NCBI GenBank assembly: GCA_009103225.1
Contig: RHPI01002048.1
Coordinates: 237,702-301,701, forward strand
From: Chlorokybus atmophyticus
Lineage: Eukaryota > Plantae > Mesostigma and Chlorokybus algae
Direction: 5' to 3'
Length of the DNA stretch: 64,000 nt
Shown: positions 9,641 to 41,855 of the stretch, in pieces
Numbering within the stretch: position 1 is the stretch's first letter
How the letters are laid out: each line of letters begins with the position of its first letter
Program-made: the position numbers and the translations under genes
Notes under the pieces: model-generated
What the model saw: the letters and a program-made list of their open reading frames with translations, nothing else
Databases searched by the model: none
What the model was told of the DNA's origin: nothing

Positions 9641-11156
9641 ATTTCACGGTAGTGTTCCCTTAGAGCAAATTCCCGGAGCATGGCAAAGCATGTTGTGCGC
9701 GTGCGCACATGTGCAGAGCCTCGCAAGCACATGATATCAACTAAGCACTATCAGCATTGTGCTTTGGCCGTAACATATCAATCAACTCTGCAACAGTCAA
9801 TGGTCGAAAACTCTTGTCACAAGGCTTCTGCTGTTGCTCACGCATGTGATCCAATCGCTGCGCTGCCTCCTCTTCACTCACACCCTCCTTCACTGCCATC
9901 TCCTTGATGGCTTTGTACAAAACGTTGCACTTGCCATAGTGCGTCTTCATTCTGTTGTCGCCGGCTCGCCATGTGGTCTTGAACCTTGCATCCAACTCGC
10001 GCACAGCAGGACCACCGTCGATCCCCTCGCTGTACTCTTTCCAAACAGCTGCAACCGTTGGCAGCTTCAACTTCATTTGATACTTGATAGGCACAGATGT
10101 GGCAACATGTGCTGCGGTTGAAGTGGACGGGGCTGCGTCCTCGTGTGGCTTTGGCTCGTTCGCGCGTGCTCGCTTGCATGAAGGTGACTTTGTGATATTA
10201 GGGGAAGTAGGAGTTGGGGATGATAGCGACTTCCTTGGCAGGGGAACGTTGAGGTTGTGCAGACCGTTGTGCAGACTCTCAATGAGAGACACGACCACCT
10301 TCAGTTGTGTCTTGGTTTCTGCAAATCCCGTCTCCACAATAGAGTTCAAGCGTTGTACCTTGCTCGCCACATCAACGATGCGATCCGAAATCGTTGTTGA
10401 CAGTGCATAGCTCCCTTGCAAGATCAAAGCCAACTGTGAACAGGCTTCAAGTCAGTATAAAAAGCAACACAAGTCACATACTCGAGCATCTACTTATGTT
10501 GAAATGCACACATATGCTTACCCGATCAGGCAAGTGTTGGTTTTCGGCTCGTTCCTCTTACATGGATAAATTGTGCGCAGTGACGACGGGTGTTGCCCAC
10601 TCGTCAAATTCGGGGTTGTTGAAAATGTCATGTTGGCAAATCGCCAGCGCATCAAGACCGAGAATGCTAGCACCCATCAATTGCACTCTACCGCTGCGCA
10701 TGATGGCTACATCCTGTTGCAAACAACGAAGGCATATGTTATGCACAGCTTATGTCACCTGCTCGGTCACATGTGCATACCTGAGCAATGACGTCCCGAA
10801 AATAATCCAACATCTCAAGATGCTTGTGCGCTGCCAGATCCTTGACCTCTCCTTCAAAGTTGCGCTGCACAATACACACGTTACACTCATGTCACGCACA
10901 AGTTACACATGCACACGCATGTGTACGCGCATACGCGCGCATGCATGCGCGCGTTGCTAATGACATACCTGTAATACTTCAGCAAACCGTCTGTCAAGGT
11001 CAGGAAAGATTTGCTTCCGCATGGAATCTGGCAATGTAAACCGCGATCGAGCCAGCACATGTTTTGACTCATGATTACGAGGTCCGTATCCAGCCACTAC
11101 TGCACACGTTGCCACATGTAGCTGTGTCCAGTACGACTTGTTAGAATGGTCATTAT

Positions 11157-11395
11157 TGTCGGGTCGAGGGGAGTCGAGGGTCACGCTGTCTTGGACAGCT
11201 GCATGGACAGCTATGTGCTGGACATGCTGCTGCGCCACCTGGGTGACGCGTAGCAAGAACAGAAAGATGACCTCCACCCTCATGGTGACAAGTGCTTCGT
11301 GCAGCTGGGGTGCTGCTGCTGGGTAGTACGGGCAGATGGAGTCGGTGTTTTCCCTAAGAACATGCTGTGCCGTAGCATACAAAGTCAACAAGCCA
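11157..11395 (-). repeat. Repeat B2 (239 bp), 3'-terminal copy of B
   Basis: Matches 11989-12230 with about 4-5 substitutions and a 3-nt indel (by eye). Confidence 0.95.
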
Positions 11396-11986
11396 CTACT
11401 ATGGGTAGTGCTGTTTACACAGTTCTTTGCGTGAGTGGGAGAGGAATTACACTGTTAAGTGAGGTGAATGAGCAAGCAACACGTGGATGCTATGCCCTGA
11501 CTGATGCCAACAAGCACACCGCGACCAAGTACACAAAGCTCACAGCAAGAACAAGCACAGTGCACAAGAACATGCACAGGCTCTCACACGGTGAGGGGAT
11601 TCTTGGGAACCAGGACGGTGTGTTCGTAGTTCAAGTCGCTTCACAAGCTCTTAGCTTTCTCACTTACAGTGTCACCAGCTGATCCGGTGAACACTGTGCC
11701 TACTTATACAAGTCAACTCATGACTGTCCAGAACATGAGCTAACGGTCATATTGAGGCTATTTCCACAAGAAATGCCCACTCGATATAGAACCAGACTTA
11801 TAACTGCACTCACAACTGAACAGCTACGCGCGGTGCCTATGCAGGCTATGGTCACGAGCTACTCTAGGGACATGACCTAGCTACTGGTCAGAGGCGCGTG
11901 CGGGTTGCCATGCTGGTAAGCCGGGCGAGGGTCTCGCTGTAGGCATGCCCGATGACGACTGGCATGCTTGGGCGATAGGCATGACA
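11396..11986 (-). repeat. Repeat A2 (591 bp)
   Basis: Matches 21652-22242, same length, about 9 substitutions by eye, mostly transitions. Confidence 0.95.
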
Positions 11987-11988
11987 GC

Positions 11989-12230
11989 TGTCGGGTCAAG
12001 GGGAGTCGAGGGTCACGCTGTCTCGGACAGCTGCATGGACAGCCATATTGTGCTGGACATGCTGCTGCACCACCTGGGTGACGCGTAGCAAGAACAGAAA
12101 GATGACCTCCACCCTCATGGTGACAAGTGCTTCGTGCAGCTGGGGTGCTGCTGCTGGGTAGTACGGGCAGATGGAGTCGGTGTTTTCCCTAAGAACATGC
12201 TGTGCCGTAGCATACAGAGTCAACAAGCCA
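11989..12230 (-). repeat. Repeat B1 (242 bp), directly after a short G-rich polypurine tract (AGGGGGGG, 12238-12231 on minus)
   Basis: Copy of 11157-11395. Separated from A2 by the dinucleotide GC at 11987-11988. The PPT is only 8 purines long, so that call is weak. Confidence 0.9.
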
Positions 12231-12275
12231 CCCCCCCTGGGCTCTGGGGAAGGTTCCAGCTCCAGAGCTCAGCTG

Positions 12276-15200
12276 CTAGCGCAAGTGAGGAGGGCCGTTG
12301 GTACGGCAGTCGTCGCACCAATATTCTTCCATAGGTATCGTGTCCAAAGGTGGCTCCAGGCAGTAGCAATGCAGGCCTTTGTTGCCATCGCAGAGCATCA
12401 TGAGTGCGTCGTCGCCGGCGCTGCCGCAGTGTTCACAGCGTGTGCTGCGCGCCGGACGAGGGTGCTGGATACGCCCGAAGCCGGCTACGTAAGGGAGGTG
12501 ACATGGCGCACAGTTCACCATGTTGTCCTTCGACCTTTCTCCGTTTTGACTAAGGAGGTCCAGCACCCCTGTGGGGTACACTTTGAGTACCTTGTAGACG
12601 GTGCGGCCTACGGAGGTGTCAAGCGTGTCTTTGGTGGCTGCCATGCGATAGGCAAAGTCCCCCGCTTGGAATCGCCGTTGGCGCTCCTTGTAAAAGCCGC
12701 TGCGTACGCGCTCGTAGCGCAGCGTGTCGCGATGCTGCGCGATGCGCAGATTGTTGAAGGCCATGGGGACGGTGCGCTCGAAAAGTGCGGCGCGCGTGGT
12801 GATGTCGTGGTGCATCCAGTCAGGGTCGTCGAGGTTGTTCACGACGCGATCCACCTCCTGTTGCGCACGGAAGGGGAGCAATGGTGGTCGCCCAAACAAC
12901 AGGTAGTACGGGCTGTACTCCCGCAGAGCTGCCTGTTTTGACAACCGATACCCAAGGGCCACCCATGGTAGGTGGTCATCCCAAGTGTCCTTCTTGTACT
13001 CCAACACGTATTTGCGGAGTGCCTTCTTGATGGTCTGTACCGTCCGCTCGGCGAGGCCGTCGGCTTGAGGGTGATCACGCGAGGTACGGCGGTGGTCGAT
13101 GTAACATTTGTCCAAGAGGGTGTCGAATTCCCCTCTGAACTCAGTACCTTGGTCGGTGATGACCTCGGCGCAGCTGCCAAAGCGGCTGAGAACGTGAGAG
13201 AGGAAGGCTTGAGACACCCCCCTGCTGCTCTTGTCGGGTAATGGCACCAGCTCCACCCATTTGGAGAAGTGCTCAATCATGACCAGGATGTAACGGTTGC
13301 CACGTGCTGAGGGTGCCAAGTCCCCCAAGATGTCGAGTCCCCATCGGTAAAAGAGACCGGAGATGGGGAGTGGGTGCAAGGTGGCGCTACGCGTGTTGAG
13401 GCTGGCACGCACCATGTCACACTGCTGGCAGTGGCTGACGAACCTTTGCACCTGTTTTGTTAATCCATACCACCAATATTGTGCTCTCACTAGACTGACC
13501 GTGCGCTTGACACCAAAGTGTCCAAGCTCAGTGTGGAGGGAAGTGATGATGTCCTCGCGTGTGACTGGTGTCGGCACTTCCTTGTCTTCGTCGTGGAAGC
13601 GGCGATACAGCTTGTCACCTGCCCATCGATAGTGACGGGTGCGTTGATTGACCCGGTCCTTCTCTCGAGCGCTCATGCCAGAGGGGAGATGGCCACGTTG
13701 AAGAAAGGAGAGTGATGGCTTGTCGTGCCATATGTCCTGCCTGGTGTCAGTGGACGCCAGCTCTGTGTCATCGACGTCAATGTCGGCTGCGTGGGCGTCT
13801 CCCAAGGGTGTGATTGCCGCAGGGTCGGTAGACTCAAGGGCAGGGTTCTCCTCTACCACTGCTGAGGTTGTGGTGTTGGTGTTGCGCCCTGAGCGCAACG
13901 CGGCAGCAGCAAACATGGCTGCCATGGTGGGAGCTGTTGCTGCAGGGATGAGCTCATGCCGCGCTCCAGTTGCGTCGTTGGTGCTGAGGTGGGGGTTGCG
14001 ACTGAGGCCATCGGCGTCTTGGTTGGTGAGGCCAGCGCGGTGGTCAATCTCGAAGTCGTATTCCTGTAACAGCAGGGCCCATCGAGCAAGTTTCCCTGTC
14101 AGATGTTGGTTGGTCATCAGCCACTTGAGGGGCTGATAATCGGTGATCAGTTGGAACTGTCGACCAAAGAGGAAAGGTCGGAAGAAGGAGATGGCCCACA
14201 CTGCAGCGAGGCATTCCCCTTTATAGCTGCTGTAGTTGGCCTCGGCGCTGTTGTTGCTTCGGCTGGCGTATGCCACCACCCGCTCCTTCTTGTGCTCATC
14301 GTGCTGCACCAGCACCGCTCCCATCCCCAGCTTGCTCCAGTCGGTGTGAAGGATGAAAGGCTTGGCGTAGTCCGGACGTTGAAGGATGGGAGCGCTGGTG
14401 AGTCTGCTCTTCAGCTCCTCGAAGGCCTGCTGTTGCGGCTCCTTCCACGCGAACTCCACCTCCTTTTTCAGTAGCTCGTTGAGGGGCCTTGCGATCTTCG
14501 CGAAGTCCTTCACGAATCGGCGATAATAGTTGGCAAGTCCCAAGAAAGCGCGCAGGCGCGTGAGGTCTGTCGGGGCAGGGATAGCTGCCAGAGCCTCTAC
14601 TTTTGCCTGCTGCACATACACACCATGGGGCACAATCATGTGCCCTAAGTACGGCACCTTGTGGGTGAAGAAGGTACACTTGTCGGGGTGTACGGTCATC
14701 CCCACTCCCTTGAGTCGTTCCAGCACCGCTTCGATGTGCTGAAGATGCTCCTCGTTGCTGCGGCTGAAGATGAGGATGTCATCGATGTAGCACCGCGCGC
14801 AGTCCAACCCCTTCAAGGCTTTGTCCATGACGCGTTGAAACTTGGCGGGGGCATTCTTCAGCCCGAACGGCATTACCTTCCATTGGTACAACTGTCGGTT
14901 GCCCCAGAAGGAGGTCTTGTGCTTGTCCTCATTCTTGATGGCGATCTGGTTGTACCCCTGACGCATGTCCAGGATGCTGAAGACTGTGCAGTCTCCCACA
15001 TCATCAAAAATACCCTCTGCTGTGGGCATGGGGTACCGGTCTTGCTTGGTCTTGTTGTTGAGGGGACGATAGTCGCCACACATGCGTCGCTCTGTCCAGT
15101 TGCCTGCTAAATCCTTCTTCAGGGGCATGACGGTTGCTGCTGCGAAGTCCGATGTGGACTCTTCGATAAGGCCTGCATCCAGCAGCGCCTTACATCTCTG

Positions 15201-16982
15201 TTCCACCAAGTCTTCTTCCAACTTGGAGAGCCTGTATTGTCGCCGAAACACCGGCTCAGTGTCCACTAGCTCGATGTCCATCTGGTACACCGAACATGTA
15301 CCCAATTCCTTCACATTGAAGCTGAATTGGCTCCTCCGTATATTGAGGAGAGCCTCCAGCTTCTCTCGAGTGTCTTCCGTGGCCAACGGGCCAATGGCAT
15401 GGTCCCAGGAGGTTGCATTGGCAACCACAGGAATGTCCTCCACTGTCACTGCCGCTTGCTCCTCCATGTGGACCACCTCGAGAGCTGTGTGAGCTGCCTT
15501 GGTGTCGACGCGATCAGCCCACCCCCCAGCCAAGTGTTCGAGATCCTCGAAGGACACGTGGCGGTCCGGCAACGCGAAGCTCAGCTCCAGCAGCCATACC
15601 ATGCTGTTCTGGTCCATGTCGCGACCAAGCAGCTGGCATTGCTGATTGTCCGTCAGCGATGAACCTGTGATGCTGTTGGGGAAGAAGCCCATGGCGCGTT
15701 CACGTTCGCGTGCGTTGGGTTCTTCCAACGTGTTGGTGGTCGCATCAAATACCATCCCGTCACCACCGTTCCGAAATGCGTCGGAGCCCGGGTAGGACAC
15801 CAATGTGGGGAGTGCGCGACGGGGCTGACCGGGCTGGTTGCACTGGTAGAAGTGGTTGTGGTCATGATGCAGGACAGGTTGTGATGTGCGGCCGGGGTCA
15901 AGGATGTCGTCGACCAGCAGGTTGCGCGGCCGAGCGCTACGCGTGTATTCGGCGGTCATGAGCTCCTCCACGGTGGCCAAGTTTGTCCATTTGGCACGTA
16001 CACGATGTGCGCGCGAGCCATGTCGTGCCGCGTTCACCTTGAGTGGGTGCCCCAGAATCGAGCAAACTTGTCGGTAGCTGGAGGTCACGTGCGGACGCTT
16101 GTCGTCCTCTGAATGCACATTTTTGATGACGTACCCCAGGGGTCTGGAGATCTGGTGGTGTTGAAGGAGGTGGATGATCCTCATCAGCTCCCAGAACAAG
16201 CTGGAGCGAGGGTTGTCGAGGCCTTGTCCCTTGCCTGCCCTGGAGTGCCCTTGGCATTCCCATCCAGCTATTAACAGGTCGACATTGCCGAGGGACAGTA
16301 GGTGATCTTCAGTGATCAGCCGGACGTCCTGTGGCAATGCTTTGAGGCTGCCTTGCAACGCCGAGAGGGGTAGTTGACGTGGATACCTGGTGTGCAGTTG
16401 GCGTAAGTGGTGCTTGAGGACCGTTTGCGCGTGTGGGTCTGGGTCGCAGTAATAGTATTTGGTAACCTTCACGCCCGTGTTGAGGACCGCAGCAAGACCA
16501 CTGCCAATGCCTCCAAACAGCTCCAACACTGTGATGCCCTGTTGCCTACGAATGGTGTGGAATTCCACCACTCCGGTGGCCACCATATGGTGGTCCTGCA
16601 CCTTGACGTGGCTTCGGTAGTTGGGGAAGCGCGTGGTGATCAGTGGGTGGCTGAGCAAGATGTGTGCGTCCACATGTGCGCGCCAGCGCCGTTCAGCTGG
16701 GTCTTGTAATGCTACTTCCACGGTGGCATCCTCCTGCTCCTCGTTGTACGGGATGGGAGAGGGGTCGCCGGTTTGACACGGGGTTGTGGCACCAGCAACA
16801 ACTTGCGTCCGAGCACCGTCGTATATGGCCATTACAGCCTTCCGGGTGCGGGCGTGTCTGCGTGTGGCCATGGCAGCCATTTTGCGTTGGGCGCGCGTGC
16901 GCGAGACCAACTCGAGAGGCAGGAAGCCCTGTACCTCTCCGTCATCCTCATCCCAATGTGGCCGGAACCACGCTCGTTCTGT
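12276..16982 (-). CDS. Pol portion: C5-MTase - reverse transcriptase - RNase H - DDE integrase - PHD finger
   Basis: RT: FSILDMRQGYNQI, MPFGLKNAPAKFQ, YIDD (~14778-14789). RNase H: LHTDWS, ECLAAVWA. Integrase: HHCC (LHTELGH...CQQC), WGLD, TDQGTEF, GLAER. C-terminal PHD. In frame with the upstream ORF across a single TGA at 16983-16985. Confidence 0.92.
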   Translation of the reverse strand, partial: TERAWFRPHWDEDDGEVQGFLPLELVSRTRAQRKMAAMATRRHARTRKAVMAIYDGARTQVVAGATTPCQTGDPSPIPYNEEQEDATVEVALQDPAERRWRAHVDAHILLSHPLITTRFPNYRSHVKVQDHHMVATGVVEFHTIRRQQGITVLELFGGIGSGLAAVLNTGVKVTKYYYCDPDPHAQTVLKHHLRQLHTRYPRQLPLSALQGSLKALPQDVRLITEDHLLSLGNVDLLIAGWECQGHSRAGKGQGLDNPRSSLFWELMRIIHLLQHHQISRPLGYVIKNVHSEDDKRPHVTSSYRQVCSILGHPLKVNAARHGSRAHRVRAKWTNLATVEELMTAEYTRSARPRNLLVDDILDPGRTSQPVLHHDHNHFYQCNQPGQPRRALPTLVSYPGSDAFRNGGDGMVFDATTNTLEEPNARERERAMGFFPNSITGSSLTDNQQCQLLGRDMDQNSMVWLLELSFALPDRHVSFEDLEHLAGGWADRVDTKAAHTALEVVHMEEQAAVTVEDIPVVANATSWDHAIGPLATEDTREKLEALLNIRRSQFSFNVKELGTCSVYQMDIELVDTEPVFRRQYRLSKLEEDLVEQRCKALLDAGLIEESTSDFAAATVMPLKKDLAGNWTERRMCGDYRPLNNKTKQDRYPMPTAEGIFDDVGDCTVFSILDMRQGYNQIAIKNEDKHKTSFWGNRQLYQWKVMPFGLKNAPAKFQRVMDKALKGLDCARCYIDDILIFSRSNEEHLQHIEAVLERLKGVGMTVHPDKCTFFTHKVPYLGHMIVPHGVYVQQAKVEALAAIPAPTDLTRLRAFLGLANYYRRFVKDFAKIARPLNELLKKEVEFAWKEPQQQAFEELKSRLTSAPILQRPDYAKPFILHTDWSKLGMGAVLVQHDEHKKERVVAYASRSNNSAEANYSSYKGECLAAVWAISFFRPFLFGRQFQLITDYQPLKWLMTNQHLTGKLARWALLLQEYDFEIDHRAGLTNQDADGLSRNPHLSTNDATGARHELIPAATAPTMAAMFAAAALRSGRNTNTTTSAVVEENPALESTDPAAITPLGDAHAADIDVDDTELASTDTRQDIWHDKPSLSFLQRGHLPSGMSAREKDRVNQRTRHYRWAGDKLYRRFHDEDKEVPTPVTREDIITSLHTELGHFGVKRTVSLVRAQYWWYGLTKQVQRFVSHCQQCDMVRASLNTRSATLHPLPISGLFYRWGLDILGDLAPSARGNRYILVMIEHFSKWVELVPLPDKSSRGVSQAFLSHVLSRFGSCAEVITDQGTEFRGEFDTLLDKCYIDHRRTSRDHPQADGLAERTVQTIKKALRKYVLEYKKDTWDDHLPWVALGYRLSKQAALREYSPYYLLFGRPPLLPFRAQQEVDRVVNNLDDPDWMHHDITTRAALFERTVPMAFNNLRIAQHRDTLRYERVRSGFYKERQRRFQAGDFAYRMAATKDTLDTSVGRTVYKVLKVYPTGVLDLLSQNGERSKDNMVNCAPCHLPYVAGFGRIQHPRPARSTRCEHCGSAGDDALMMLCDGNKGLHCYCLEPPLDTIPMEEYWCDDCRTNGPPHLR
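12293..12437 (-). other. PHD finger at the integrase C-terminus (one Cys apparently lost)
   Basis: CEHCGSAGDDALMMLCDG-NKGLHCYCLEPPLDTIPMEEYWCDDC fits the C4HC3 pattern except for the fourth Cys. Confidence 0.85.
15590..16535 (-). other. C5 cytosine DNA methyltransferase domain (DNMT3-like motif style) inside the polyprotein
   Basis: Motif I VLELFGGIG; motif IV DLLIAGWECQGHSRAG with the catalytic Cys kept; LDNPRSSLFWE; motif VI VIKNV (ENV expected); motif VIII AHRVRAKWTN; motif IX ERERAMGF; motif X QLLGRDMD. Confidence 0.9.
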
Positions 16983-19649
16983 TCAGCAGTCGAGGCCTAT
17001 GCCCACAGGGAAGTTGAAATCCTGCCCAAGCAGAAAGTCGAAGGAGCCGGCATTGGTGACCACGCATTGCTGGACGATCTCGGTCGTGTGGGTTGGGTCC
17101 AGCCCTGTCAACCGAATGCAAAAGGCCTCCCTGGTGACTCCCATCACCTTATCCCGGCTACCTGTGGCAGTGTCCAACACGTACGGGCAAGGCACCAAGT
17201 CGGAACTGGTTATGCCTAGGGACCGCGCGAGGAAGCGCCCGATGATGACAGGCTGTTCTCCGGTGTTCAACATTACCCGCTTGGGTGCCAGACCGTTGAT
17301 GGTAACGTGCTTGCCTTGGTTGGCCACTATGGCAGCGTTGGCGTCGATACGCAACCTCTTCATACGAGGTGTCTGTTCCTCTGACTCAGTTGTCTCAGCT
17401 GGAGATGCTGAGCGCATGGCAGCCAGAGCTCCTCTGCCTGCTGGATCCGGAGAACCCTCTCCTTGCCCTCTCCCTCTGCCGAACCGACCTTGTCGAGGTG
17501 GTTGGTAGACACGGGGGGGCCTCGGTGCTGGAGGTTCCGGCGCCGGTTGTGGTGGCGGCGCAGGTGGATGACGCCTCTGCGAAGCTGGAATCATGCCCGC
17601 GGGCGTACCCAGTGGCTGTGGAGGGAACCCCGGCGGACCCGGTGTTTGTGGGCCTGCCTCGCGTTCAGCTTGCTCCGCGGCGTACGTCCATCGCACAGCA
17701 TGAGCCGCTTCTCTGACCAATGTCCCTTCCCACGTGGCCGTGGGCTCGGTGTCCGTGTCGGTCCAATGACGATATTGAGGCATGGGCTGCAGGTATACGG
17801 CGCGTAGTAGCTGTCGCCGCATGTCGTGAGTAATGGTGGGGACTCGTAAGATCCCTGCCATGTAGGCATCCCACCTTCTTTGTACCACTCCCACATCGAG
17901 CACAGTCATGGCGCGAGCACGTAGGGTGCGCTGGAGGTCAGTCTGCTGTGCGTGTAGCTCATGAGCAATGGCGATGCGCCGCCGTTGCCGTGCGGCTTCC
18001 ACCCCTGGCAGCCGAAGCATTGCCTCTTGCACTCCCTCCAACGTGTCCGGGGCTGTGGTGGCAGCCTCGTCGTATGCTTGTCGCAGCGAGCGAACGAATG
18101 CCCCCAACCATGATGCTCGGTTGCCAAAGGCAAACAGGGGGACAGCAGGGTGATTGGCAACGAGCCATGTCACGAGACGAGCTCGAGCGGCGCTGCCCTC
18201 TTGCATCCCCATCATCTGTCTTAATGTGTTGCCCTCAGGCCTGTGCAACATGACTGCTTGCCGGATGAGTGCGGTACGGAGTTGTTGCTCCCCCACCATA
18301 CCAGCTCCTCCTCGTTGTGTGGTGTCCCCTTGCGGGGTGAGGTACCCTCGCCCTGCATCGCGTTGATCCTCAGGCATGTCTTCGACCAAAGGAGGCAGCA
18401 ACGGGGCGATTACTCCCCTCAATTGTTGCGCCAACGCCCTCGCTTGGTCTGCAACAGTTGCGTGTCCCGGCTGCTCGATGGCGATCGCCGTGGAGTGTGC
18501 TGTGGTCGGCGCCGTGGAGGCGCTGGTAACATGTGTTGGCGCTACGGTTGGTACGATAACGGCGTGTGCTGCTTCGTACGCTTGTCGGCGCGCGTCCACT
18601 TGGGCAGCTTGGTCCATGCGATACCGATGGGCCTGTTCGAGTGCAGAGAAACGCTCTTGACGACTACCTGGAGTGAGCCCCCGGAGAGCGGGATCAGCGC
18701 CCAGCGCGATGTCAGACATCGTGACCACGAGGTCTTGCAGTTTGTGTCGCTGGAGGCTGAGTGGGTCCAGTGGTGAAGGCTCGAAGTCGATCTGTTGAGC
18801 GGGCATGGGCTGTCGCGATTGACTGGGTGCGCCCTGCAACCGTGCGTGTAATGCCAGGAATAACTGGATGGCCAGTTCCAACACCGCAGGTCGGCGATAG
18901 GTGACCCCGAACAGACGATCCCTCATCTCTGGTGCAGTGCCGGCGAGGATTTCATCCTCCAGCTGCTGTTGTGTGGGTTCCGGCAGCGTGTGGTATTCTG
19001 GCGGTGGTAGGGGCAAGATGCGATCATCGCGTGCCACGCGCGTGGTGCGTTGCCCCCCTGGTCCGTACGCAATAGTGGTGGGCTCTTCGTTGCGTAGAAT
19101 CGACGCCCAGGCGCGTTCCGCTTGCGGCTCGCGTGGCACTTGCTGTGTGACGTCTAATGCTGGTGGCGGTGCCGTCCGGCCCTCATGAAGTGGTGCGGTG
19201 GGTAGGGCAGCACTACTTGAGGCGATGGTGGTGGCACCTGCCGCAGTCGTCGTCACTGAAGTGGCGGCTGTGAGGGTGGCAGCAGTTGCGGTTGATGTGG
19301 TCGCTCCGATGGAGGCTGGAGTGGTGGATTCACCACTTACGAACCCAACGACCATGGTTGCTGCGGCGTGGGTGCTCTCTATCACCGGGAACAGCGTGGT
19401 GCCACGAGTGCTGACACCTGCTGTCGTGGTCGGTGTGGACGCCGACGGTGTCATCAACGGCGTCGTCCCAGCGGTGGTTGTGGCTGCCGAGGCCGCACCA
19501 CTTGTGGCGTCCGACGATGCCGCTGTTGACGACGCGCCAGCTTCCCTGCGCGCCCGTCTGGATGTTTGTACGCGTGACGGCGTGGGAGTGTCCCTATCCC
19601 GTTTCGGTGCCATCAATGCCCACCTAGCAGCATAGCAGGCTTGATAGTC
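16983..19649 (-). CDS. Middle part of the polyprotein: low-complexity + unknown helical region + aspartic protease
   Basis: 877-aa ORF ending in VMLNTGEQPVII (DTG reads NTG)...FDFLLGQDF. Same frame as gag (after TAG at 19650-19652) and pol (after TGA at 16983-16985). Confidence 0.8.
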   Translation of the reverse strand, partial: DYQACYAARWALMAPKRDRDTPTPSRVQTSRRARREAGASSTAASSDATSGAASAATTTAGTTPLMTPSASTPTTTAGVSTRGTTLFPVIESTHAAATMVVGFVSGESTTPASIGATTSTATAATLTAATSVTTTAAGATTIASSSAALPTAPLHEGRTAPPPALDVTQQVPREPQAERAWASILRNEEPTTIAYGPGGQRTTRVARDDRILPLPPPEYHTLPEPTQQQLEDEILAGTAPEMRDRLFGVTYRRPAVLELAIQLFLALHARLQGAPSQSRQPMPAQQIDFEPSPLDPLSLQRHKLQDLVVTMSDIALGADPALRGLTPGSRQERFSALEQAHRYRMDQAAQVDARRQAYEAAHAVIVPTVAPTHVTSASTAPTTAHSTAIAIEQPGHATVADQARALAQQLRGVIAPLLPPLVEDMPEDQRDAGRGYLTPQGDTTQRGGAGMVGEQQLRTALIRQAVMLHRPEGNTLRQMMGMQEGSAARARLVTWLVANHPAVPLFAFGNRASWLGAFVRSLRQAYDEAATTAPDTLEGVQEAMLRLPGVEAARQRRRIAIAHELHAQQTDLQRTLRARAMTVLDVGVVQRRWDAYMAGILRVPTITHDMRRQLLRAVYLQPMPQYRHWTDTDTEPTATWEGTLVREAAHAVRWTYAAEQAEREAGPQTPGPPGFPPQPLGTPAGMIPASQRRHPPAPPPQPAPEPPAPRPPRVYQPPRQGRFGRGRGQGEGSPDPAGRGALAAMRSASPAETTESEEQTPRMKRLRIDANAAIVANQGKHVTINGLAPKRVMLNTGEQPVIIGRFLARSLGITSSDLVPCPYVLDTATGSRDKVMGVTREAFCIRLTGLDPTHTTEIVQQCVVTNAGSFDFLLGQDFNFPVGIGLDC

Positions 19650-21427
19650 CTACTCCTTGTTTTCCTCCAGCTGTGCCACGCGCGCCATCAGGGCTGCCAC
19701 TTGGTCGATAGCCGGTGGATTGGTTGGTGCATTTACGGCAGCAGCTCCAGCGCGAGGACGTCCCTCAAGTCCTTTGTGCTGTGGAGGGCGGTTTTTCCCT
19801 CTATAGCCAGCTTCTTCCTTGCGGCCGCCAGCGTTGTTGTTGTTGTTGGGGTTGTGGCCACCAGCGTTCTTGCCGTTGTTGCGACCACCAGCGTTGTTGC
19901 TGTTGTTGTGGCCGCCAGCGTGGTTGCTGTTGTTGTAGCCCCCGTTGTTGTTGTGGTTGTTGTGGCCGCGGTAGCCAACAGCGTTGTTGCTGTTGTTGTA
20001 GCCAATAGGGGGCCGCAGCTCAGGGAACTTGAGCCAGCATACTGTCTCCAAGTGTCCCGTCTTGTGGCAGTGGTCGCACACAAGGTTGCCGTAATCTTCG
20101 GTGCACTCCTTTTGGTAGTGGCCATGTCGACCACACCGGTGGCACAGCACTGGAGCCACAAGGGCAGCATGAGCTGACCGTTCATCCTTGTAATAGATGC
20201 CTTGCGACGCCCGGCTGCGGTCCCGCCGAAAAGGCTCTGCACTTGTGCCTGCCATAGGCCGTGAGGCACTGCGGTTGGTGTCCAGCACCGCTTTCTCATA
20301 CACTGCGCGCTTATGGATGGCTTGTGCAGTCTCGAAAGCTTCCTTGAGGGTGTAGCCAAGGGGCCTGCTGTAGTTCAGAGTCAGGCGTGTCGACTCGCTC
20401 AGAGCAGCATCCACCTCATTGATGTATATCACTGCAGCAGCCTCCTTACTGACAATCCTGTAGTCAGTGTCCTTCAGCAGACCTTCCAGTCTGGAGTACA
20501 AGCGGAGGGGATCCTCATTGGGCTTGCGTCGGAAGCGTCTCAGCTCCTCAACCTTGCTGGTGGTCTGAGGAGGGAAGGTGCGGCGCAGGGCAGAGTACAG
20601 GTCCTTGAGTGGCGAATCAGAGATGGCAGCACCTACGGAGATGGCTGGTGCGCGCAGTGCTACTGACCCGAGGGTGAAGGTACTGCCTCCTGCACGAGAG
20701 CCAGGTGTTGCCGGAGGTAGAGGAGTACCCCACTCTGCGGCTGCCGCTTGCTGTGCAGCTCTTTGTTCCTCAATGATGACGGCAGAACGGTCAAGGATGC
20801 GGACTCGACGTGTGGCCTCCTTGGACTCAACTTGTGCAGGGGTCAAGTTGACAAGTACCAACTCCGGTTCCTCCTCCTCTGCCTGCTTGAGAGCTGCAGC
20901 TATGGACAAGCCTGTTACTGCAACTGAAGTGGCAGGTGGAACGACACCTGTTGGACGGTGCAGCGATGCAGATGCTATGGTGCTGGCAAGCTCGCCATAG
21001 CCGTCTACTCGATGCAGTTCAGCAACGGACTTCCAGACATCGTGTGCTTCATAATCAAGATACTGAGCAGCAATGTGGAAAGAGATCTCATCTGACCAGT
21101 CTTTGTTCTTCAGAGCTTGCTGCCGCATCTTGGAGTGGAACTTGATGATGAATCACCCAGCGAGGTGGTGCCGGCACGTCCGGAGAAGCGCAGGGATGTG
21201 GTTGAACTGAAAGACTCCATCTCGTTGTCGTCGCTGTCCGATGATAGTGGAGAAGCTTGATGACGAGGAGTAGAGTGGAGCGGGGTGAAGCTGGAGATGG
21301 AGCGCGAGCCTCTGCTGCTGCGGTCGATGCTCCCGTCACTGGTCCGCTCGTAGGTGAGGTTGGTGGTTGGGCTCCAACTGCTGAGGTCACCCTCGTCTAT
21401 TGGGGAGAACGGGGTGGGCCTGCTCAT
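19650..21427 (-). CDS. Gag with two CCHC-type zinc knuckles; apparent 1-bp frameshift near 21150
   Basis: ELRRFRRKPNEDPLRLYSRL, CHRCGRHGHYQKEC, CDHCHKTGHLETVC. The upstream ORF 21427-21110 (...RFSGRAGTTSLGD) joins FIIKFHSKMRQQ if one T is restored. Confidence 0.8.
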
Positions 21428-21626
21428 ACAGCTGGTGCGATGGTGAAAGTGGATGAAGGGTAGAGTGTTTGTGTTCTACAATGGGATCTCCAGTGCTGCT
21501 ATCACCCAACACACTAGCGCTTGTGCGCGCTATGCGATGACGGTGACAACACTGCACTGTGATGTGTGCAACTACAGATTGCGATGCTGATGTACAGCTT
21601 GCAACTACACTCACTTGAGCAAAGAG

Positions 21627-21641
21627 GGTGACACTGTAAGT
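21627..21641 (-). other. Candidate self-priming primer-binding site
   Basis: The 15 nt ACTTACAGTGTCACC (minus strand) lie at the inner edge of A1 and are the exact complement of 21932-21918 within A1. Confidence 0.7.
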
Positions 21642-21651
21642 CAACAAGCCA

Positions 21652-22242
21652 CTACTATGGGTAGTGCTGTTTACACAGTTCTCTGCGTGAGTGGGAGAGG
21701 AATTACACTGTTAAGTGAGGTGAATGAGCAAGCAACACGTGGATGCTATGCCCTGACTGATGCCAACAAGCACACCGCGACCAAGTACACAAAGCTCACA
21801 GCAAGAACAAGCACAGTGCACAAGAACATGCACAGGCTCTCACACGGTGAGGGGATTCTTGGGAACCAGGACGGTGTGTTCGTAGTTCAAGTCGCTTCAC
21901 AAGCTCTTAGCTTTCTCACTTACAGTGTCACCAGCTGATCCGGTGAACACTGTGCCTACTTATACAAGTCAACTCATGACTGTCCAGAACATAAGCTAAC
22001 GGTCATATCGAGGCTATTTCCACAGGAAATGCCCACTCGATACAGAACCGGACTTATAACTGAACTCACAACTGAACAGCTACGCGCGGTGCCTATGCAG
22101 GCTATGGTCACGAGCTACTCTAGGGACATGACCTAGCTACTGGTCAGAGGCGCGCGCGGGTTGCCATGCTGATAAGCCGGGCGAGGGTCTCGCTGTAGGC
22201 ATGCCCGATGACGACTGGCATGCTTGGGCGATAGGCATGACA
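21652..22242 (-). repeat. Repeat A1 (591 bp), 5'-terminal, containing the putative promoter
   Basis: Copy of 11396-11986; begins TGTCATG on the coding strand. Confidence 0.95.
21959..21964 (-). promoter_or_regulatory. TATA box of the retroelement; predicted TSS at ~21932
   Basis: TATAAG on the minus strand, 32 nt upstream of the first base of the sequence complementary to the primer site. Confidence 0.55.
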
Positions 22243-25200
22243 TTATTCCAACGACCATTCTGTTTGACGCCATCCTCAGAAGCCCTGCATGTATACATGT
22301 ATACTCAACAAACACATAAAGCACTTGTGACAAAATCATGCTTTTATACATGTTCTATCAGCTCAACATGTACGACGTACCCCGCATTGATAGCTTGTTG
22401 CGCATACCCCTTGCGCACAGCATGCACGCAAGTGGCTGTGACAATCTTGCATGTTCGATTGACCTCGCGCTGTCGCTGCCACTGTTGCCTGTAGGTAATG
22501 GGGTCACCTGGCTTCATGCCTGAAATCACATGTGTCCCATACCTACATTTCACATCAACACTCAATTAAGGCACCCATAATAGCAGCAACATGACAACCA
22601 CCACAAAATATTAGACTAGCTCACCATGATTGGCGAGTCTCAAATGCAGGTTCTGACGCACGAGCAATATGATACTTGTAGAAGTAATGGAAAGCCAAAG
22701 CATTGTGAAGATCAATGACTGGGTTCCAATTGCGCAGGCCCTCAATGTACTCAATGTTGCCATTCTGCAACAGCAACAGACAGTAGTTTATGACATACAC
22801 GGTGTCAACATAAATTGATTGATAGTATCCAAGATCTCACCTTGTTCATTTTGCCATTCCGCGAGACAAAACAGAGCATGACACCGTGATCTGGGCCCAA
22901 GACTTCCACAGGGACGTTATACTTGTAGAAGTCACATTCTTCTACAGCTCGACAAACGTCCCCTTTTTAAATGCACGAGTGGCGCAATACCGGATCCAAG
23001 CTGTTGCACACCATATATCAGGGAACCTTTGCAGGGTTACAACACAATCACTTGCAACTCATCAGTCAATTCATACCGCGCATTTAAGGATGCGGCTTGC
23101 TTCAACTGGTTGCTGGTGTTAGCGCTTTTGCGAAGCCAGTACTCATTCATGTTGCAGTAGTCTTCTTGAGTGTAGCCCTCAGCATCAGTGCCGGCTAGTC
23201 GGTCATGAAACTCCCTGAGCAATCATCGCTACTCAGTGCACATACTTGTGGCAACATCATTTTAACATGTGCATGCTCCGGACTACACTTACTTTTTGGC
23301 TATCTCGCTGATGCTGCGCCTCGCATCACTAAGCACTTGCTTTACAATGGGGCTGCGTCTACAATCGAGAGGACTAGTTCCATGCCCATCCCTCATTGCC
23401 TGGTCTTTTGCCGCATCTTGCACGCTTTTGATGATGTTCTCTAGCACACTCCATTTCCAGTGCTGATGTGCCAGCATGAACTTCTCTACATTCCCCACCT
23501 CAATCCGCTCATGGAGCTGTTGCTGTGAGCACCACTCATGCATGATTGCAATGATCTCAATCGTCTTCATAGCCAAAGAGTATACAAATGCATATTCATA
23601 TGTAACTCACCCTATATTGTTTCAAACCGCGGTCATATTTGCTACTTGTGTTCTTTGGGCGTTGCGTCTGCTTTTTGTTAAGCAGGTCATCAATGTTGAG
23701 TGGTCGCATGCTGCGCGCAATAGTTTCTTCTTGTTGACGGGCATCGTCGTCAACATGTGTCTCTACGTCGCTTTCATCGCCGCTCGTACTTGCCTGCAAT
23801 AGTCAATGCCATTCACCTCATGAACATGTCACGCCAACATTGTGCACGTGACATCATGTATATTGTATTGCTTAAACAAATGGCTCTTACTTGCGATGGT
23901 GAAAAACACAGCGCGGCTGCCGCAACAGGGAGCATGCTCCATCCTTTGAGCAGGTTGTGCTTGTGTTGATGGTAATGATGCTGCGATGCAACAATAGGGC
24001 TTGGCCAGTGCTGTAGCGATGACAACAAGGGAGCAGGCGCGCCGCCGCTGATGCTGAATGCCAAAACCAACCTGCACACATTGCGCAAGCGCAGTGCCCG
24101 CATGAACAACGGTGCTAACAATCAGCAATTGACGTTAGCAACTATCACATGATGTTGCATGGCATATAGCAGAGCGCAACATAATAGTGTCAGTTACCTT
24201 GGCTAGCCATCTACACAACTCGCAAGCATCAATGCCTATGGTAAGGAGTAAAGGCACAGAGGTGTACAGTGTGAGCACTATATACGCATGGCCGCGCGTA
24301 TGCCCACGCGTGCAAGCCCCTTCGCCTACAGCAGCTGACTCTCCAGCACCGGCACCTGTACAATGTCACTGTTAACAATGTTATTATCGTTGTTGTTGTT
24401 GTTGCACAGACCAAGCAGCCCTAAGATGACAACAATAACCTAAATATGCTGGTTCTGTTTGTTGTTGTGCATAATGCGTGCGCATGTACATGTTTTTGTT
24501 TGTTGATGTGTGTGTGTCTGTTTGTTGTTGTCTTCACGCATTTGTGCCAACGTGAATGCGTGCTGTTAGTGTGTTCAAGTGAATACGAACCTCGTGCATG
24601 GTGGTGGTGCGATGCTAGAATGCGCAACCCCCTTGAGACTTGAGCACCGCCCCACGCTGCTGTCAACTCTTCCTTCACCTGCAGCAGCTGCCTCTCCAGC
24701 AACACCTGCACACTGTCATGTCGTTAATGTTGTTGTGAAACGGTAAAGTGTTGTTCAACATGCGCACACACAATGCATACACTCACCACACACTACATGC
24801 GCGCACACAGTAACGCGCATATACTAACCAACCGACACACCACACAAATAGGCGCACATAACAAAATTAAGAAGACATCTATTATAATTGATTTACACAA
24901 AACCGCTGTATTATAGACCAACATAACTCACCGAAACTTGAACAACTCTACCAACATAAGTTGCTACATAACTTGCTTGAAGCTGCTGGACTTGGCGCTC
25001 AAGCGCCTCCAGCAGCTCCGACTCCGCCGCCGCTAGGCCGGCACCTGCAGCTCCCGAACTGCGAGCTCCTGATGGCTCGCAGCCGCTGCGCCGCCGCCTG
25101 GAAAACCCACCGCCGCAGCCACAGCCGCCGCAATCAGCTACTACTACTGCTTCTCCTCATCTTCCTCCTCCTCCTCCTCCTCCTCCTCCTCCTCCGCCGC

Positions 25201-33151: not shown

Positions 33152-36100
33152 CAGTCTGCCCTCGATATAAGAGCCACGTTTGGACAGCACCAAGCTGCTC
33201 TTATATCAAGGTGCTCTTAACTCGAAATAAAAGCAATTGGCCTATTTTGCTCATATAACAAAAGTCAGGCCAAAACACACCAATCTATTCCGTTTTGCAT
33301 TGTCCAACGCGTGGAGTAGCTCACGTTCGACATTGTGATGTAAAACATCACATTGTGCAGCAGTACAAACAACATCTGCACCCAAAACTCAACACGCATA
33401 GTGAATTCATGTGTGTGCGCATGCGTGCAAGTGCGAGACATTGGATTGCTCAATCATGAGCATGTTGCAAAAAACTCACGAATGTCTGCCTGCTGCCTAC
33501 GACTAATGTTGGCAACAACTAACTTTGTCACTCTATCTATAAAACGTTGCCCAAAGTGCATCTTGTGGTGAGAACACATCTTGGTTGTCCGCAATGAACA
33601 CTCCCACTCCGGTAGCAGATTGCACTGCGTCAGACATAGCAATAGGGGCAGGTGGGATCTCATCCACGTCCTCCTCCTCATCTTCTTCAACCTCCTCCAC
33701 CACCTGCTCTGGTGCAACCACAGCCACCAACTCTTCCACAGTGAGTTCGGCCTGAACATTAAGTTCTGTGACTAGGTCGACATAGTCCTCCGCATCCATG
33801 GCGCACAAGCGCGCTGGACTGGTGATGTGCAGGAGTTGTCTTCATTGATAGCAGATTTGCAGCTTAGAGACAACGCCATGGATGCGGAGGACTATGTCGA
33901 CCTAGTCACAGAACTTAATGTTCAGGCCGAACTCACTGTGGAAGAGTTGGTGCGCGCTCTCGCACGTTGTCGTTGCGGCTATCTGCTTGCCATGAGACAG
34001 GTGGGATGTTGGCCTTGCGAAAGCAGTTGCGTATGATGGAAGCCTCCACTGTCGACCAGATGTCAACGGACCAGAACAGAGCTTGTTTAACATTGACCTT
34101 GATATTCTTCAGCTTCACACCTAGTTTAAGTCCCTACCTTCAACAATGACGCAAGCAACGCTACGATGATGTTAAGAATGAACATAACAAGTTGTTACCA
34201 ATTGCATACCTGGGTTTTGCTCCATCATCAGCAACAACCATGCCACCAGCTGTTTCCTGAAACGCAACTTGAAAGAAGCGATGATGCCCTGGTCCATCGG
34301 CTGCACGTGAGAGGTAGTGTTGGCAGGAAAAAAAACGATGGTGACATGGGATAGCTTGATGATGTCCAGGCCATGCAGCTTTTCCCGCTTGTCACCGGGC
34401 ACATCGTGACTGGAGGCGTTGTCAATCAACACCACAATCTTCCTGTCTGCAATTTTCATGTCCGTATTCACCCCTTGGATCCAATGCACAAACACTTTGG
34501 TGGTCAACCACGCTGTTGGGTTGCTGTACCAATGCACAAAGTTTTCAAGCTTGAAGCCTTTGGGAAAACATTGAGGCTTTGCGCTCTTGTTGACAATCAC
34601 TAGCCTCAATTTGTCGCTACCATCCGCGTTGGCAGCAAATGCGACTGTTATGCGCTCTATGGCCTTCTTGCATCCACGCACATGCTCGGACTCTACCGTG
34701 AGAGTCTTATCAGGTTGCGCTCTGATTATGAGTCCGCCTTCGTCAAAGTTGCAGGTTGTGGCAGGTGTTGCTTCAAGTGCTTCCAAAACAAGACGCACCT
34801 TTTGCCTCGCCGCGCTGACACCCTCCATGTCCGCATCTGCAGCCTCTCCATGCATCCTCTTGCATGAGATGTTGTATCTGCAACAGAATTTTGCAGTCAT
34901 GCAAATGCACGCAATGCACATGCAACTCTACCGGCGCTATACCTGAGTTTGTAGTTGCTGAGCCAGCCATTTGAGGCTTTGAAGTCTGCCTCTGGTATTT
35001 TCATGTGGTCGCGAATCTTCTTTGCTTGAGTCTTCACCATCTCATCTGAGATAGGTAACTCCTGCGCGCGCGCCTGCACGGTGTAGAAACTAAACTTACA
35101 TATAATGTTGCTATCACAGTGCATGACAGACAACAAACTACGCAATGCACAACTCACTGCTTTGAACCATGTGTACACCGCCTCTTCCAACAGCACATGT
35201 GCTGCCTGACGATGACTTTTCCTTTTGGCTGCATGCTTGTTGTGCTCATCAACTTGTAGCCATTGCTCTTCCTGTTGTAAGATTTTTTGACAGCGTCTGC
35301 CGCTTCACATACTTTTTCATTGCTTTTTCACCTTCAGGACCTGCTGATCGTGACTCAACTCTTCATGCTTTTGCCTCAGTTCACATATCTGCTTCTTCTC
35401 AAGATCGGTGAGATGCACACGGCTCTTTTTGGGTGATCGCATGTTTGCGGTTGTGTTGGCATCCAGAGTTTGACAATGGCTTGCACTACGTTCATGAGGA
35501 ATGCACAACACAACTGATTGCAATGCACAATGCACAAACATACGCCCACTTGAGTAGTGGACATGTGCAGTTGAAGAAGTGAACGTAAAAACAGTCACAT
35601 AAGGCTACCAAACACACCTACACTTCGTCTGAGTAATGGCAAGCTGTCTTCGCACATAGGAACATGTATGTATGCTTTTGGCATGCACGTCGTAGCCGTG
35701 CACTTGTAACTAGCACACAACAGAAGCATCAGTGACTTACTTAGCGCCCTAGGCCAGGCTGACTTGACCAGGACTACAAAGCACAAGCTCGCAAGCATTG
35801 ACCGCACACAATGTGACCATTGCACCTGTACCAGTCGCCTCTGCGCCGCCCTCCTGCTTCTCTCTCTTAATCCTGCACCGCCGCCGCTGCCGCCGTCGCC
35901 GCGCGGCCTGTCTGTTGCAGCAGGCAACAGTTGGCGGACATCCTTGCTGACGCTGACAGTCTGCCGATTGTCAGCTTTAACGTTCGCTGACTGTCGGCTT
36001 AAGCAGCGTCGCAGGAGTGCAGACAACCAATGGTCGCCGCCCTCGTTGTAAGAGCAATGGGCACTTTTAACTGCTCTTAAACCAAGTGATCTAGCTCTTA

Positions 36101-38181: not shown

Positions 38182-38232
38182 TGTCGGGCCGAGGTGAGTC
38201 GGGGGTCACGCTGTCTCGAACAACTGCATGGA
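38182..38232 (-). mobile_element. Diverged 51-bp terminal fragment of the B repeat of the DNMT retroelement family
   Basis: About 45/51 identical to 11157-11207; begins at the same TGTCGGG terminus. Confidence 0.75.
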
Positions 38233-41247: not shown

Positions 41248-41855
41248 TGTCACGCCCATGAGGCAAAAGTCAATCTATGTTCCTTACTTATGTTAGTAAG
41301 AGATTGAGTGGGAATTTCCATCTCATAGGCTTGTGTAGTGCTTGTGAGGTGTGCCCTCATGTAGGTCTACTCTTAAGCCTATATGGCCTTGGGTGTGATG
41401 AACACAAAGCACTGTATGTTAGCAAGCACAAGGCTGATTAGTGCCATAGGCTCTGCATGACTTGTGGAATGCCAGTGCTGTAACACTGGGACAGCATGTG
41501 TGCTGCCAGTGGCAAATGGCAACTCAGTCATGCGGTTTGCCAGTATAATGTGTTTTGAGCGCACACATGACGGATTGTGGCAGTTCACCAATTTGAGGTT
41601 GACTTGTCATGTGTTTGATAATCCCGAGGTTGATGCCTTATGATAGGACATGTTCCATGTTGGACACAGTCAGCTTGTGCTGATAGGTCGGCACACAGTG
41701 ATAAGGCCTTGGGCCCTGGACATCCTGTGTGCCTGGTCGGGAGAGCAGGAAGTGGTATAAAGGCTTGGTAGCAACCTTGAGTAGCTATCAAAGTGTTCAC
41801 CACGTGAGGGCCACCTGTGTGTGGGGTGCCTGAATGTAGCTGTTGAAGGGGCTCT

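Follow-up and report, generated by a model that had tools for sequence, protein, structure and literature searches.

A Ty3/gypsy retrotransposon with a DDE integrase and split direct repeats, and its green-algal relatives

The 64,000-nucleotide stretch of DNA analyzed here (the window) harbors, at positions 11157-22242 of the minus strand, an 11-kb Ty3/gypsy retrotransposon of a green alga that combines a DDE integrase with split direct repeats. In the textbook classification, split direct repeats denote tyrosine-recombinase retroelements, and two matching LTRs denote integrase elements. The clade of the window element breaks this tie between repeat layout and integration enzyme. The split layout is common to this green-algal clade, as read in the loci with readable repeats. 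We conclude that the element is probably a slightly decayed copy of the KnitGypsy-Dnmt3 type, with a functional LTR of the form B-NN-A and an integration route via a two-LTR circle and an internal integrase site.

On the minus strand, the element reads A1 (591 bp), gag-pol, a G7 tract, B1 (242 bp), GC, A2 (591 bp), and B2 (239 bp) (Table 1). The repeat pairs were detected by self-BLAST and repeat finding. In plus-strand coordinates, 11382-11986 aligned with 21638-22242 (605 bp, 98.5% identity, E = 0) and 11157-11396 aligned with 11989-12231 (243 bp, 97.1% identity, E = 4e-115), the two pairs overlapping by 13-14 nt. These coordinates returned the same lengths that an earlier note on this DNA had given for an A1-ORFs-B1-GC-A2-B2 arrangement. 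Two matching LTRs at both ends are absent; the left end consists of A only, and the right end of B-GC-A-B. The A copies differ by nine substitutions and the B copies by four, indicating that they are not assembler duplicates, and the N-runs of the window all lie outside the element. The termini are TG (reverse complement of 22241-22242) and CA (reverse complement of 11157-11158). TTAT is found on both sides of the element, and the chance of such a 4-bp match at fixed positions is 1/256. Both the TG...CA ends and the TTAT duplication had been claimed before and could be read at the element flanks.

Table 1. Positions of the element's repeats, junctions, and coding regions in the window
Feature	Position	Strand	Remarks
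Target-site duplication copy TTAT, adjoining A1	22243..22246	-	Same letters as 11153-11156
A1 repeat, 591 bp	21652..22242	-	Start TGTCATGCC; TGTAA 23 nt before end (R/U5-like part of LTR)
r1, 13-nt TGGCTTGTTGACT	21639..21651	-	Primer-binding-site position, directly 3' of A1
Internal part	21651-12231	-	Between A1 and B1
gag-like ORF, 492 aa	19653..21128	-	CCHC knuckle, N/G/H-rich 27-bp repeats; stop is in-frame TAG 19650-19652
Long Ala/Thr/Pro-rich region and aspartic protease	16986..19649	-	Same frame as gag; stop is in-frame TGA 16983-16985
DNMT3-like C5-methyltransferase, RT, RNase H, HHCC zinc finger, DD35E integrase core, PHD finger	12279..16982	-	Same frame
G7 polypurine tract	12231..12237	-	Directly upstream of B1; kept in L004, L005, L007, L036, L076, L081, L084
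B1 repeat, 242 bp	11989..12230	-	Start is r2 (12218-12230); end ...CCCGACA
GC spacer	11987..11988	-	Within palindrome GACA-GC-TGTC (11982-11991); proposed internal integrase site
A2 repeat, 591 bp	11396..11986	-	98.5% identity to A1
B2 repeat, 239 bp	11157..11395	-	Start is r3 (11383-11395) at A2/B2 junction; ...CCCGACA is element end
Target-site duplication copy TTAT, adjoining B2	11153..11156	-	

The order gag-PR-DNMT3-RT-RH-IN-PHD forms a single polyprotein frame, which is interrupted in the window copy by two in-frame stops. Pfam domains in pol occur in the order Asp_protease, RVT_1, RT_RNaseH, Integrase_H2C2, and rve, the integrase core matching rve with an E-value of 2.5e-9. In an alignment with 19 relatives, the integrase residues H567, H572, C602, C605, D634, D694, and E729 were invariant. 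The three sense pieces and 11 antisense ORFs contained no match to Phage_integrase or to any other recombinase domain. The earlier description of a DDE integrase without a recombinase holds; the integrase is of the HHCC/DD35E type. The methyltransferase domain matches PF00145, with DNMT3A/3B/3C as its best solved relatives, and among the protein matches of pol are 'transposon 17.6' and polyproteins of plant gypsy elements. The RT groups within Ty3/gypsy, not DIRS, and its position in the tree is beside plant two-LTR gypsy elements.

The insertion is flanked by Crypton-like ORFs on the minus strand, in which GCR1_C was matched at 9741-10433 (E = 2e-18) and NDC10_II, weakly, at 10960-11154. When the element and one TTAT were removed in a script, an open stretch of 85 minus-strand codons spanned the junction. 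The proposal that excision restores the Crypton frame was therefore borne out only in part, as just 19 of these codons lie on the far side.

The same order of G-run, short B, CA-NN-TG, and A recurred in at least five further lineages, which come from independent assemblies and have 40-57% pol identity. The TGTCAYG start of A and the 2-bp spacer are conserved across these related lineages. One relative (L004) is a complete A1-int-B1-AC-A2-B2 copy with no recognizable target duplication. B1-NN-A2-B2 was read in L007, L008/L009, and L036, A1...G-run-B1-GC-A2 in L076, and G-run-B-GC-A in L081, L012, and L084. Relative L005 is an A-int-B copy with a TTTT target duplication and corresponds to the A-ORFs-B product that had been predicted. 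Copies of the A-int-B form can arise by recombination between B1 and B2 as well. A Coleochaete scutata transcript and metagenome contigs come closest to the element (55-57% identity), and a scan of viral contigs for relatives yielded none. The layout-bearing loci fall into one clade (SH 0.98) with proteins from Klebsormidium, Closterium, Coleochaete, and Chlamydomonas, the latter including CHLRE_09g398141v5. The loci with two LTRs, which carry the classic TGGTATCAGAGC primer site, group in a clade of their own, and none of them lies inside the clade of the element. By the earlier note, its reading would be refuted if other family members were ordinary LTR elements. Among the element-clade loci with readable repeats, we found G-run-B-CA-NN-TG-A(-B) and no ordinary B-A...B-A two-LTR element, an outcome in favor of that reading. 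As part of the explanation we favor, A1-internal-B1-NN-A2-B2 is likely the normal integrated form of the clade.

How could such a form arise from an element with a DDE integrase? We take B-NN-A as the functional LTR because B1 directly follows the G-run in all lineages, because the poly(A) signal TGTAA sits 23 nt before the end of A and is absent from B, and because the A2/B2 junction joins the base before the primer site exactly to the base after the G-run. The U3 region would then begin immediately downstream of the G-run polypurine tract, and the end of R would coincide with that of A. The transcript would start within A1 and have its poly(A) site where A2 ends, and ordinary reverse transcription would yield a linear (B-NN-A)-internal-(B-NN-A) DNA. 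Joining of its ends would give a two-LTR circle and thereby create the A/B junction; A2/B2 indeed corresponds to a U5-end/U3-start junction like that of a two-LTR circle. The DDE integrase would bypass the LTR tips and act on the internal near-palindrome CA-NN-TG of the LTR adjoining the primer site, where it would cut each strand 3' of its CA. Such a cut would leave recessed CA-OH ends with 2-nt 5' overhangs, and their joining to the target would produce the 4-bp duplication. Palindromic LTR-LTR junctions are reported to be cleavable by retroviral integrases (PMC1905944, PMC1180852). A circle with two palindromes that is cut at random predicts the permutation A-B-NN-A-int-B, too, which was seen at none of the four readable 5' ends (window, L004, L005, L076), a small sample. 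Likewise, neither solo A-B units nor this alternative permutation occurred in the window or the related loci, whose contigs carry few 5' ends. The circle route fits the anatomy of the element, from which we infer the transcript ends, the circle, and the internal cleavage. More tentatively, and with doubts that outweigh our confidence, we suggest that the whole green-lineage clade, including the Klebsormidium, Coleochaete, Closterium, and Chlamydomonas relatives, may integrate obligatorily from a two-LTR-circle-like intermediate that the DDE integrase opens at a CA-NN-TG palindrome encoded by the template within the LTR. In that case the split layout would follow from replication through a circle, reached independently by integrase and tyrosine-recombinase elements, rather than a recombinase signature.

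The primer site deviates from that of the two-LTR outgroup, as the tRNA-iMet primer site is absent from the element. The letters that follow A1 begin with TGG, but their complement would form an AU-rich acceptor end and is not tRNA-like. No tRNA genes were found in the window. Tf1-style self-priming received no support either, since the reverse complement of r had no match in A at up to three mismatches; the only matches are internal, with three mismatches each. The 13-nt r occurs exactly three times, namely at the primer position after A1, at the start of B1, and at the A2/B2 junction. These are precisely the three places needed if no circle were formed and extra template switches using r instead gave rise to a linear tandem-LTR DNA, (B-NN-A)-int-(B-NN-A)(B-NN-A), of which the integrase would process the first and the last CA-NN-TG. 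The occurrence of r at the primer position and at the start of B hints at this route, and a single r at the A2/B2 junction is expected for homology-guided joining. However, r is missing from the L004/L005, L076, and L081 families despite their identical layout, so that a general mechanism cannot depend on it. It is confined to the family of the window element and was rejected as a clade-wide feature. Template switching would furthermore require several non-canonical switches and the removal of long flaps. Altogether, we regard it as unlikely.

It is far less probable that a tyrosine recombinase moves the element in trans, as in PAT/Ngaro/DIRS, and that the encoded DDE integrase is vestigial, even though the layout equals the one described for DIRS-type elements in a published figure legend (PMC5890265, Fig. 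1e) and a Crypton-like element adjoins the insertion. All 19 aligned relatives keep the HHCC and DD35E residues unchanged, no ORF on either strand encodes a recombinase domain, and the Crypton is the interrupted target and lies outside the element. Moreover, TG...CA ends combined with a 4-bp duplication, present in L005 likewise, are the mark of a DDE integrase. DIRS-type elements are not known to make a target-site duplication.

The window contains a single copy, but a one-off event in an ordinary two-LTR element, be it aberrant integration, nested insertion, post-insertion rearrangement, or misassembly, is hardly credible given that the order and the junctions recur in independently assembled DNA of at least five further lineages and that the same layout is reported for K. 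nitens elements (PMC5890265). A nested insertion, with an A+B LTR split by the internal part, was rejected because in all lineages the G-run is directly next to B1 and the internal part directly next to A1; misassembly was rejected because the repeat copies carry point differences and the element is free of N-runs.

A one-line remark from 2018 has now become a conserved anatomy comprising the G-run, a short B, the CA-NN-TG near-palindrome, the TGTCAYG start of A, the 4-bp duplication, and A-int-B by-products. Repeat layout alone is an insufficient ground for assignment to DIRS, and LTR-finding software will mis-annotate such elements. If the circle route is true, the cutting of a circle junction by integrase, a side path in retroviruses, would be the main path here, and the old question of circles as integration precursors would become testable in an alga.

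A DIRS-like repeat arrangement on a Gypsy body has been in print since 2018 for KnitGypsy-Dnmt3 of Klebsormidium nitens (de Mendoza et al., 2018, Nat Commun 9:1341, PMC5890265, Fig. 4c legend), and the window element is a further member of that type. Both share a Dnmt3-like methylase inside the Gypsy Pol ORF and the A-coding-B-A-B repeats, which the published legend gives for KnitGypsy-Dnmt3. The K. nitens protein KFL_009030040 (DNMT-RT-RH-IN) is collinear with the window pol, with 40% identity over 1341 aa. The window element nevertheless represents a separate family, showing 40-47% identity to K. nitens proteins. The 2018 paper does not describe how the junctions are built, nor a target duplication or a mechanism. 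The present analysis adds the PHD finger and the CA-NN-TG site. A C-terminal PHD finger is also present in the Chlamydomonas elements REM1 and Gypsy-7a_cRei (PMC9940879), the comparison with Chlamydomonas being one of proteins.

With PAT/Ngaro/DIRS elements, such as TOC1/TOC3 of Chlamydomonas and SymbioDIRS-Dnmt3, the window element shares the A1-ORFs-B1-A2-B2 split direct repeats and an internal B-A junction that holds the information for rebuilding the ends. These elements are usually modeled with a circular intermediate. In contrast to them, the window element lacks a tyrosine recombinase and possesses a DDE integrase, TG...CA ends, a 4-bp duplication, and a Ty3/gypsy RT. It resembles ordinary Ty3/gypsy elements in its PR-RT-RH-IN order, CCHC gag, polypurine tract, TG...CA ends, and a duplication within the 4-6 bp typical of that group, but the ends used by its integrase would lie inside the LTR and not at the tips, resulting in a circularly permuted integrated copy. 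Dictyostelium DGLT-A was considered as a split-LTR precedent and rejected, since it is depicted with ordinary LTRs. In the retroviral two-LTR circles of HIV-1 and PFV (PMC1905944, PMC1180852), a DDE integrase similarly cleaves both strands of a palindromic junction at CA and regenerates integration-competent ends. Cleavage at that tip-to-tip junction is, however, a side or salvage reaction, whereas the window element carries a fixed, template-encoded palindrome with a 2-bp spacer in each LTR, whose cleavage would be the obligatory route.

Repeat search and self-BLAST of the window gave two matches on the plus strand, one of 605 bp (11382-11986 and 21638-22242; 98.5% identity) and one of 243 bp (11157-11396 and 11989-12231; 97.1%), confirming the repeat positions claimed in the earlier note. 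All long ORFs of the element lie on the minus strand, on which it starts with TGTCATGCC and ends with CCCGACA. TTAT adjoins both ends, and the claimed termini and target duplication were thus recovered as well. The copies of A and of B differ by point changes and were therefore not duplicated by the assembler, and all N-runs of the window lie outside the element. We conclude that the observation in the earlier note is real and that its interpretation is supported. A separate 51-bp fragment is 88% identical to the outer B end, and no other part of the element adjoins it.

Features of the window, with positions and strands
Feature	Position	Strand	Remark
A1	22242-21652	-	repeat pair
Internal region	between A1 and B1	-
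B1	12230-11989	-	repeat pair
GC spacer	11988-11987	-	between B1 and A2
A2	11986-11396	-	repeat pair
B2	11395-11157	-	repeat pair
ORF piece 1		-	CCHC knuckle
ORF piece 2		-	aspartic protease at piece end
ORF piece 3		-	C5 DNA methylase, RT, RNase H, HHCC finger, rve core, PHD finger
In-frame TAG	19650-19652	-	between ORFs
In-frame TGA	16983-16985	-	between ORFs
Methylase	15471-16568	-	DNMT3-like; within pol, upstream of RT
27-bp repeats	19839-20009		Asn/Gly/His-rich units in C-terminal gag part
GCR1_C domain	9741-10433	-	left flank; E 2e-18
NDC10_II-like match	10960-11154	-	junction stretch; weak, E 0.06
Fragment of B end	38182-38232		51 bp
Older element, LTRs	41848-42197 and 48696-49027	+	79% identical
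Older element, gag	43886-44824	+
Older element, RT	45842-47051	+
Older element, integrase	47303-47896	+
RING-finger ORF	54888-56117	+	409 aa; C3HC4

The three ORFs share one frame, a gag-pol of about 2950 codons split by two in-frame stops; their domains were searched piece by piece, without read-through. When the integrase was aligned with 18 relatives, its HHCC and D,D,35,E residues showed no variation, and no recombinase domain was found in the sense pieces or in 11 antisense ORFs, the latter yielding 0 family matches. A DDE integrase without a recombinase, as noted earlier, was thus borne out. In three relative proteins (P0135, P0015, P0019), a single unbroken ORF covers gag, protease, methylase, RT, and integrase and reads on at both stop positions. 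The two stops therefore look like decay, and the window copy appears defective. Among solved structures, its methylase matches DNMT3A/3B/3C best. Its motif IV is ECQ and its motif VI IKNV; most relatives have ENx, and one K. nitens relative has EHV. Given these motifs, the methylase of the window copy may be inactive.

The RT-integrase query retrieved more than 1500 relatives. The best were 53-57% identical and came from metagenomes and one transcriptome; proteins of K. nitens, Closterium, and Chlamydomonas were 43-48% identical, many with methylase and PHD finger, and P0001 is a Coleochaete scutata transcript. The closest of these relatives suggest a streptophyte alga as the source of the window. 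Loci were taken from scans of metagenome and genome collections. The complete copy L004 (48% identity) reads flank, A1 starting TGTCATGCC, internal region, G9, B1 ending ACGACA, spacer AC, A2 starting TGTCATGCC, B2 ending TTACA, flank. L007, L008/L009, and L036 have a G-run followed by B1-NN-A2-B2. In L076 (57%), A1 starts with TGTCATGACC, and G6 precedes a B1 of ~116 bp ending ACGACA, then spacer GC and an A2 that starts TGTCATGACC and is cut by the contig end; L081 (56%), L012, and L084 show a G-run, then B ending ACA, spacer GC, and TGTCAYG. The spacer is 2 bp in all (GC, AT, AC), and the palindrome arms around it share TGTC plus further matches, up to a 16-bp perfect palindrome in L084. 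L081, L082, L084, and L087 are assigned to bacterial MAGs (Synechococcales, Mollicutes, Halanaerobiaceae), yet are algal retrotransposon DNA; the two ends of the L081 contig share an identical 127 bp, as expected if the assembly path became circular through collapsed repeats.

A FastTree phylogeny (LG+G) of 58 query-anchored RT-integrase sequences placed all split-anatomy loci in one 35-tip clade (SH-like support 0.98), which also holds the proteins from Klebsormidium, Closterium, Coleochaete, and Chlamydomonas. The earlier note had raised the possibility that relatives are ordinary two-LTR elements, but no locus of the 35-tip clade with readable repeats is of this type. The loci that carry a single ordinary LTR pair (L028, L046, L057, L071, L079, L097) group apart in a plant-type clade (support 1.0); there the 5' LTR ends CA(T), and a primer site of the classic TGGTATCAGAGC type follows a few bases on (L057, L071). 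Thus, the layout is a clade character and not an accident.

A G-run stands directly before B1 in every lineage, so that plus-strand priming there would start the LTR at B. The internal region adjoins A1, and the window element has a TGTAA signal 23 nt before the A end and none in B; A would thus hold R and the transcript 3' end, leaving B2 untranscribed. With its start at B and R in A, the LTR in reverse-transcription sense would be B-NN-A. The A2/B2 junction resembles that of a two-LTR circle: the base just ahead of the primer position is fused to the one just behind the G-run. The CA and TG used for integration face each other over 2 bp inside B-NN-A, and cutting the circle 3' of both CAs would leave CA-OH ends recessed behind 2-nt 5' overhangs, on which DDE integrases normally act. 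A cut in the LTR next to the primer site would give exactly A-int-B-NN-A-B; beyond the anatomy, we infer these steps from sequence. The other permutation expected from random circle opening was not seen among four readable 5' ends. Cleavage at palindromic LTR-LTR junctions has been reported for retroviral integrases (PMC1905944, PMC1180852).

The window element holds three copies of a 13-nt string, TGGCTTGTTGACT: one behind A1, one behind the G-run, and one at A2/B2. The string could help a circle to close precisely or, alternatively, support template switching that generates tandem LTRs without a circle. The string is confined to the window element, and relatives show no comparable overlap. 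Under the circle model, a one-LTR circle would yield A-int-B. L005 (2245-11436), with A1, internal region, G-run, and a single B before the flank and TTTT on both sides, is this form with a target duplication, a product that had been predicted. L002 (2279-2456) and L006 (9007-9182), which belong with L005 to the L004 family, also end in internal region, G-run, and B before the flank, without A2-B2. B1 x B2 recombination can produce the A-int-B form as well, and the three loci stem either from recombination or from integration of the one-LTR type.

The interrupted host sequence (9741-11156, minus strand) looks Crypton-like, judged from its GCR1_C domain and the NDC10_II-like stretch; Pfam detected no recombinase catalytic domain in it. 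After removal of the element and one TTAT by script, the minus strand is open over 85 codons spanning the junction, 19 of them on the far side. As the two flanks were searched each on its own, the claim that excision restores a Crypton frame is only partly confirmed. Elsewhere, the window carries two tandem duplications (309 bp x2, 97%; 105 bp x2, 100%) and a 79-bp perfect inverted repeat (43366-43978; 53793-54001; 33725-33952), and a RING-finger ORF that may be an exon of a host gene. Another Ty3/gypsy element (41848-49027, plus strand), older than the split-repeat element and ~30% identical to it, has an ordinary LTR pair.

TOC1 has been called a non-autonomous DIRS element, and PHD fingers were noted in Chlamydomonas Gypsy elements (Craig et al., 2022; PMC9940879). 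KnitGypsy-Dnmt3 was described from K. nitens (de Mendoza et al., 2018; PMC5890265), and the legend to Fig. 4c there already gives this Gypsy element a DIRS-like repeat order (A-coding-B-A-B); that paper and its supplement give no mechanism, junction, or duplication for it, and our literature search found no further paper on it. What appears new here is the predicted internal integrase site conserved across the clade, together with the by-product forms, and through these the circle hypothesis is open to testing. The window element itself represents a new family, though one whose kind had been noted before, and its pol is collinear with the methylase-bearing pol of K. nitens at 40% identity.
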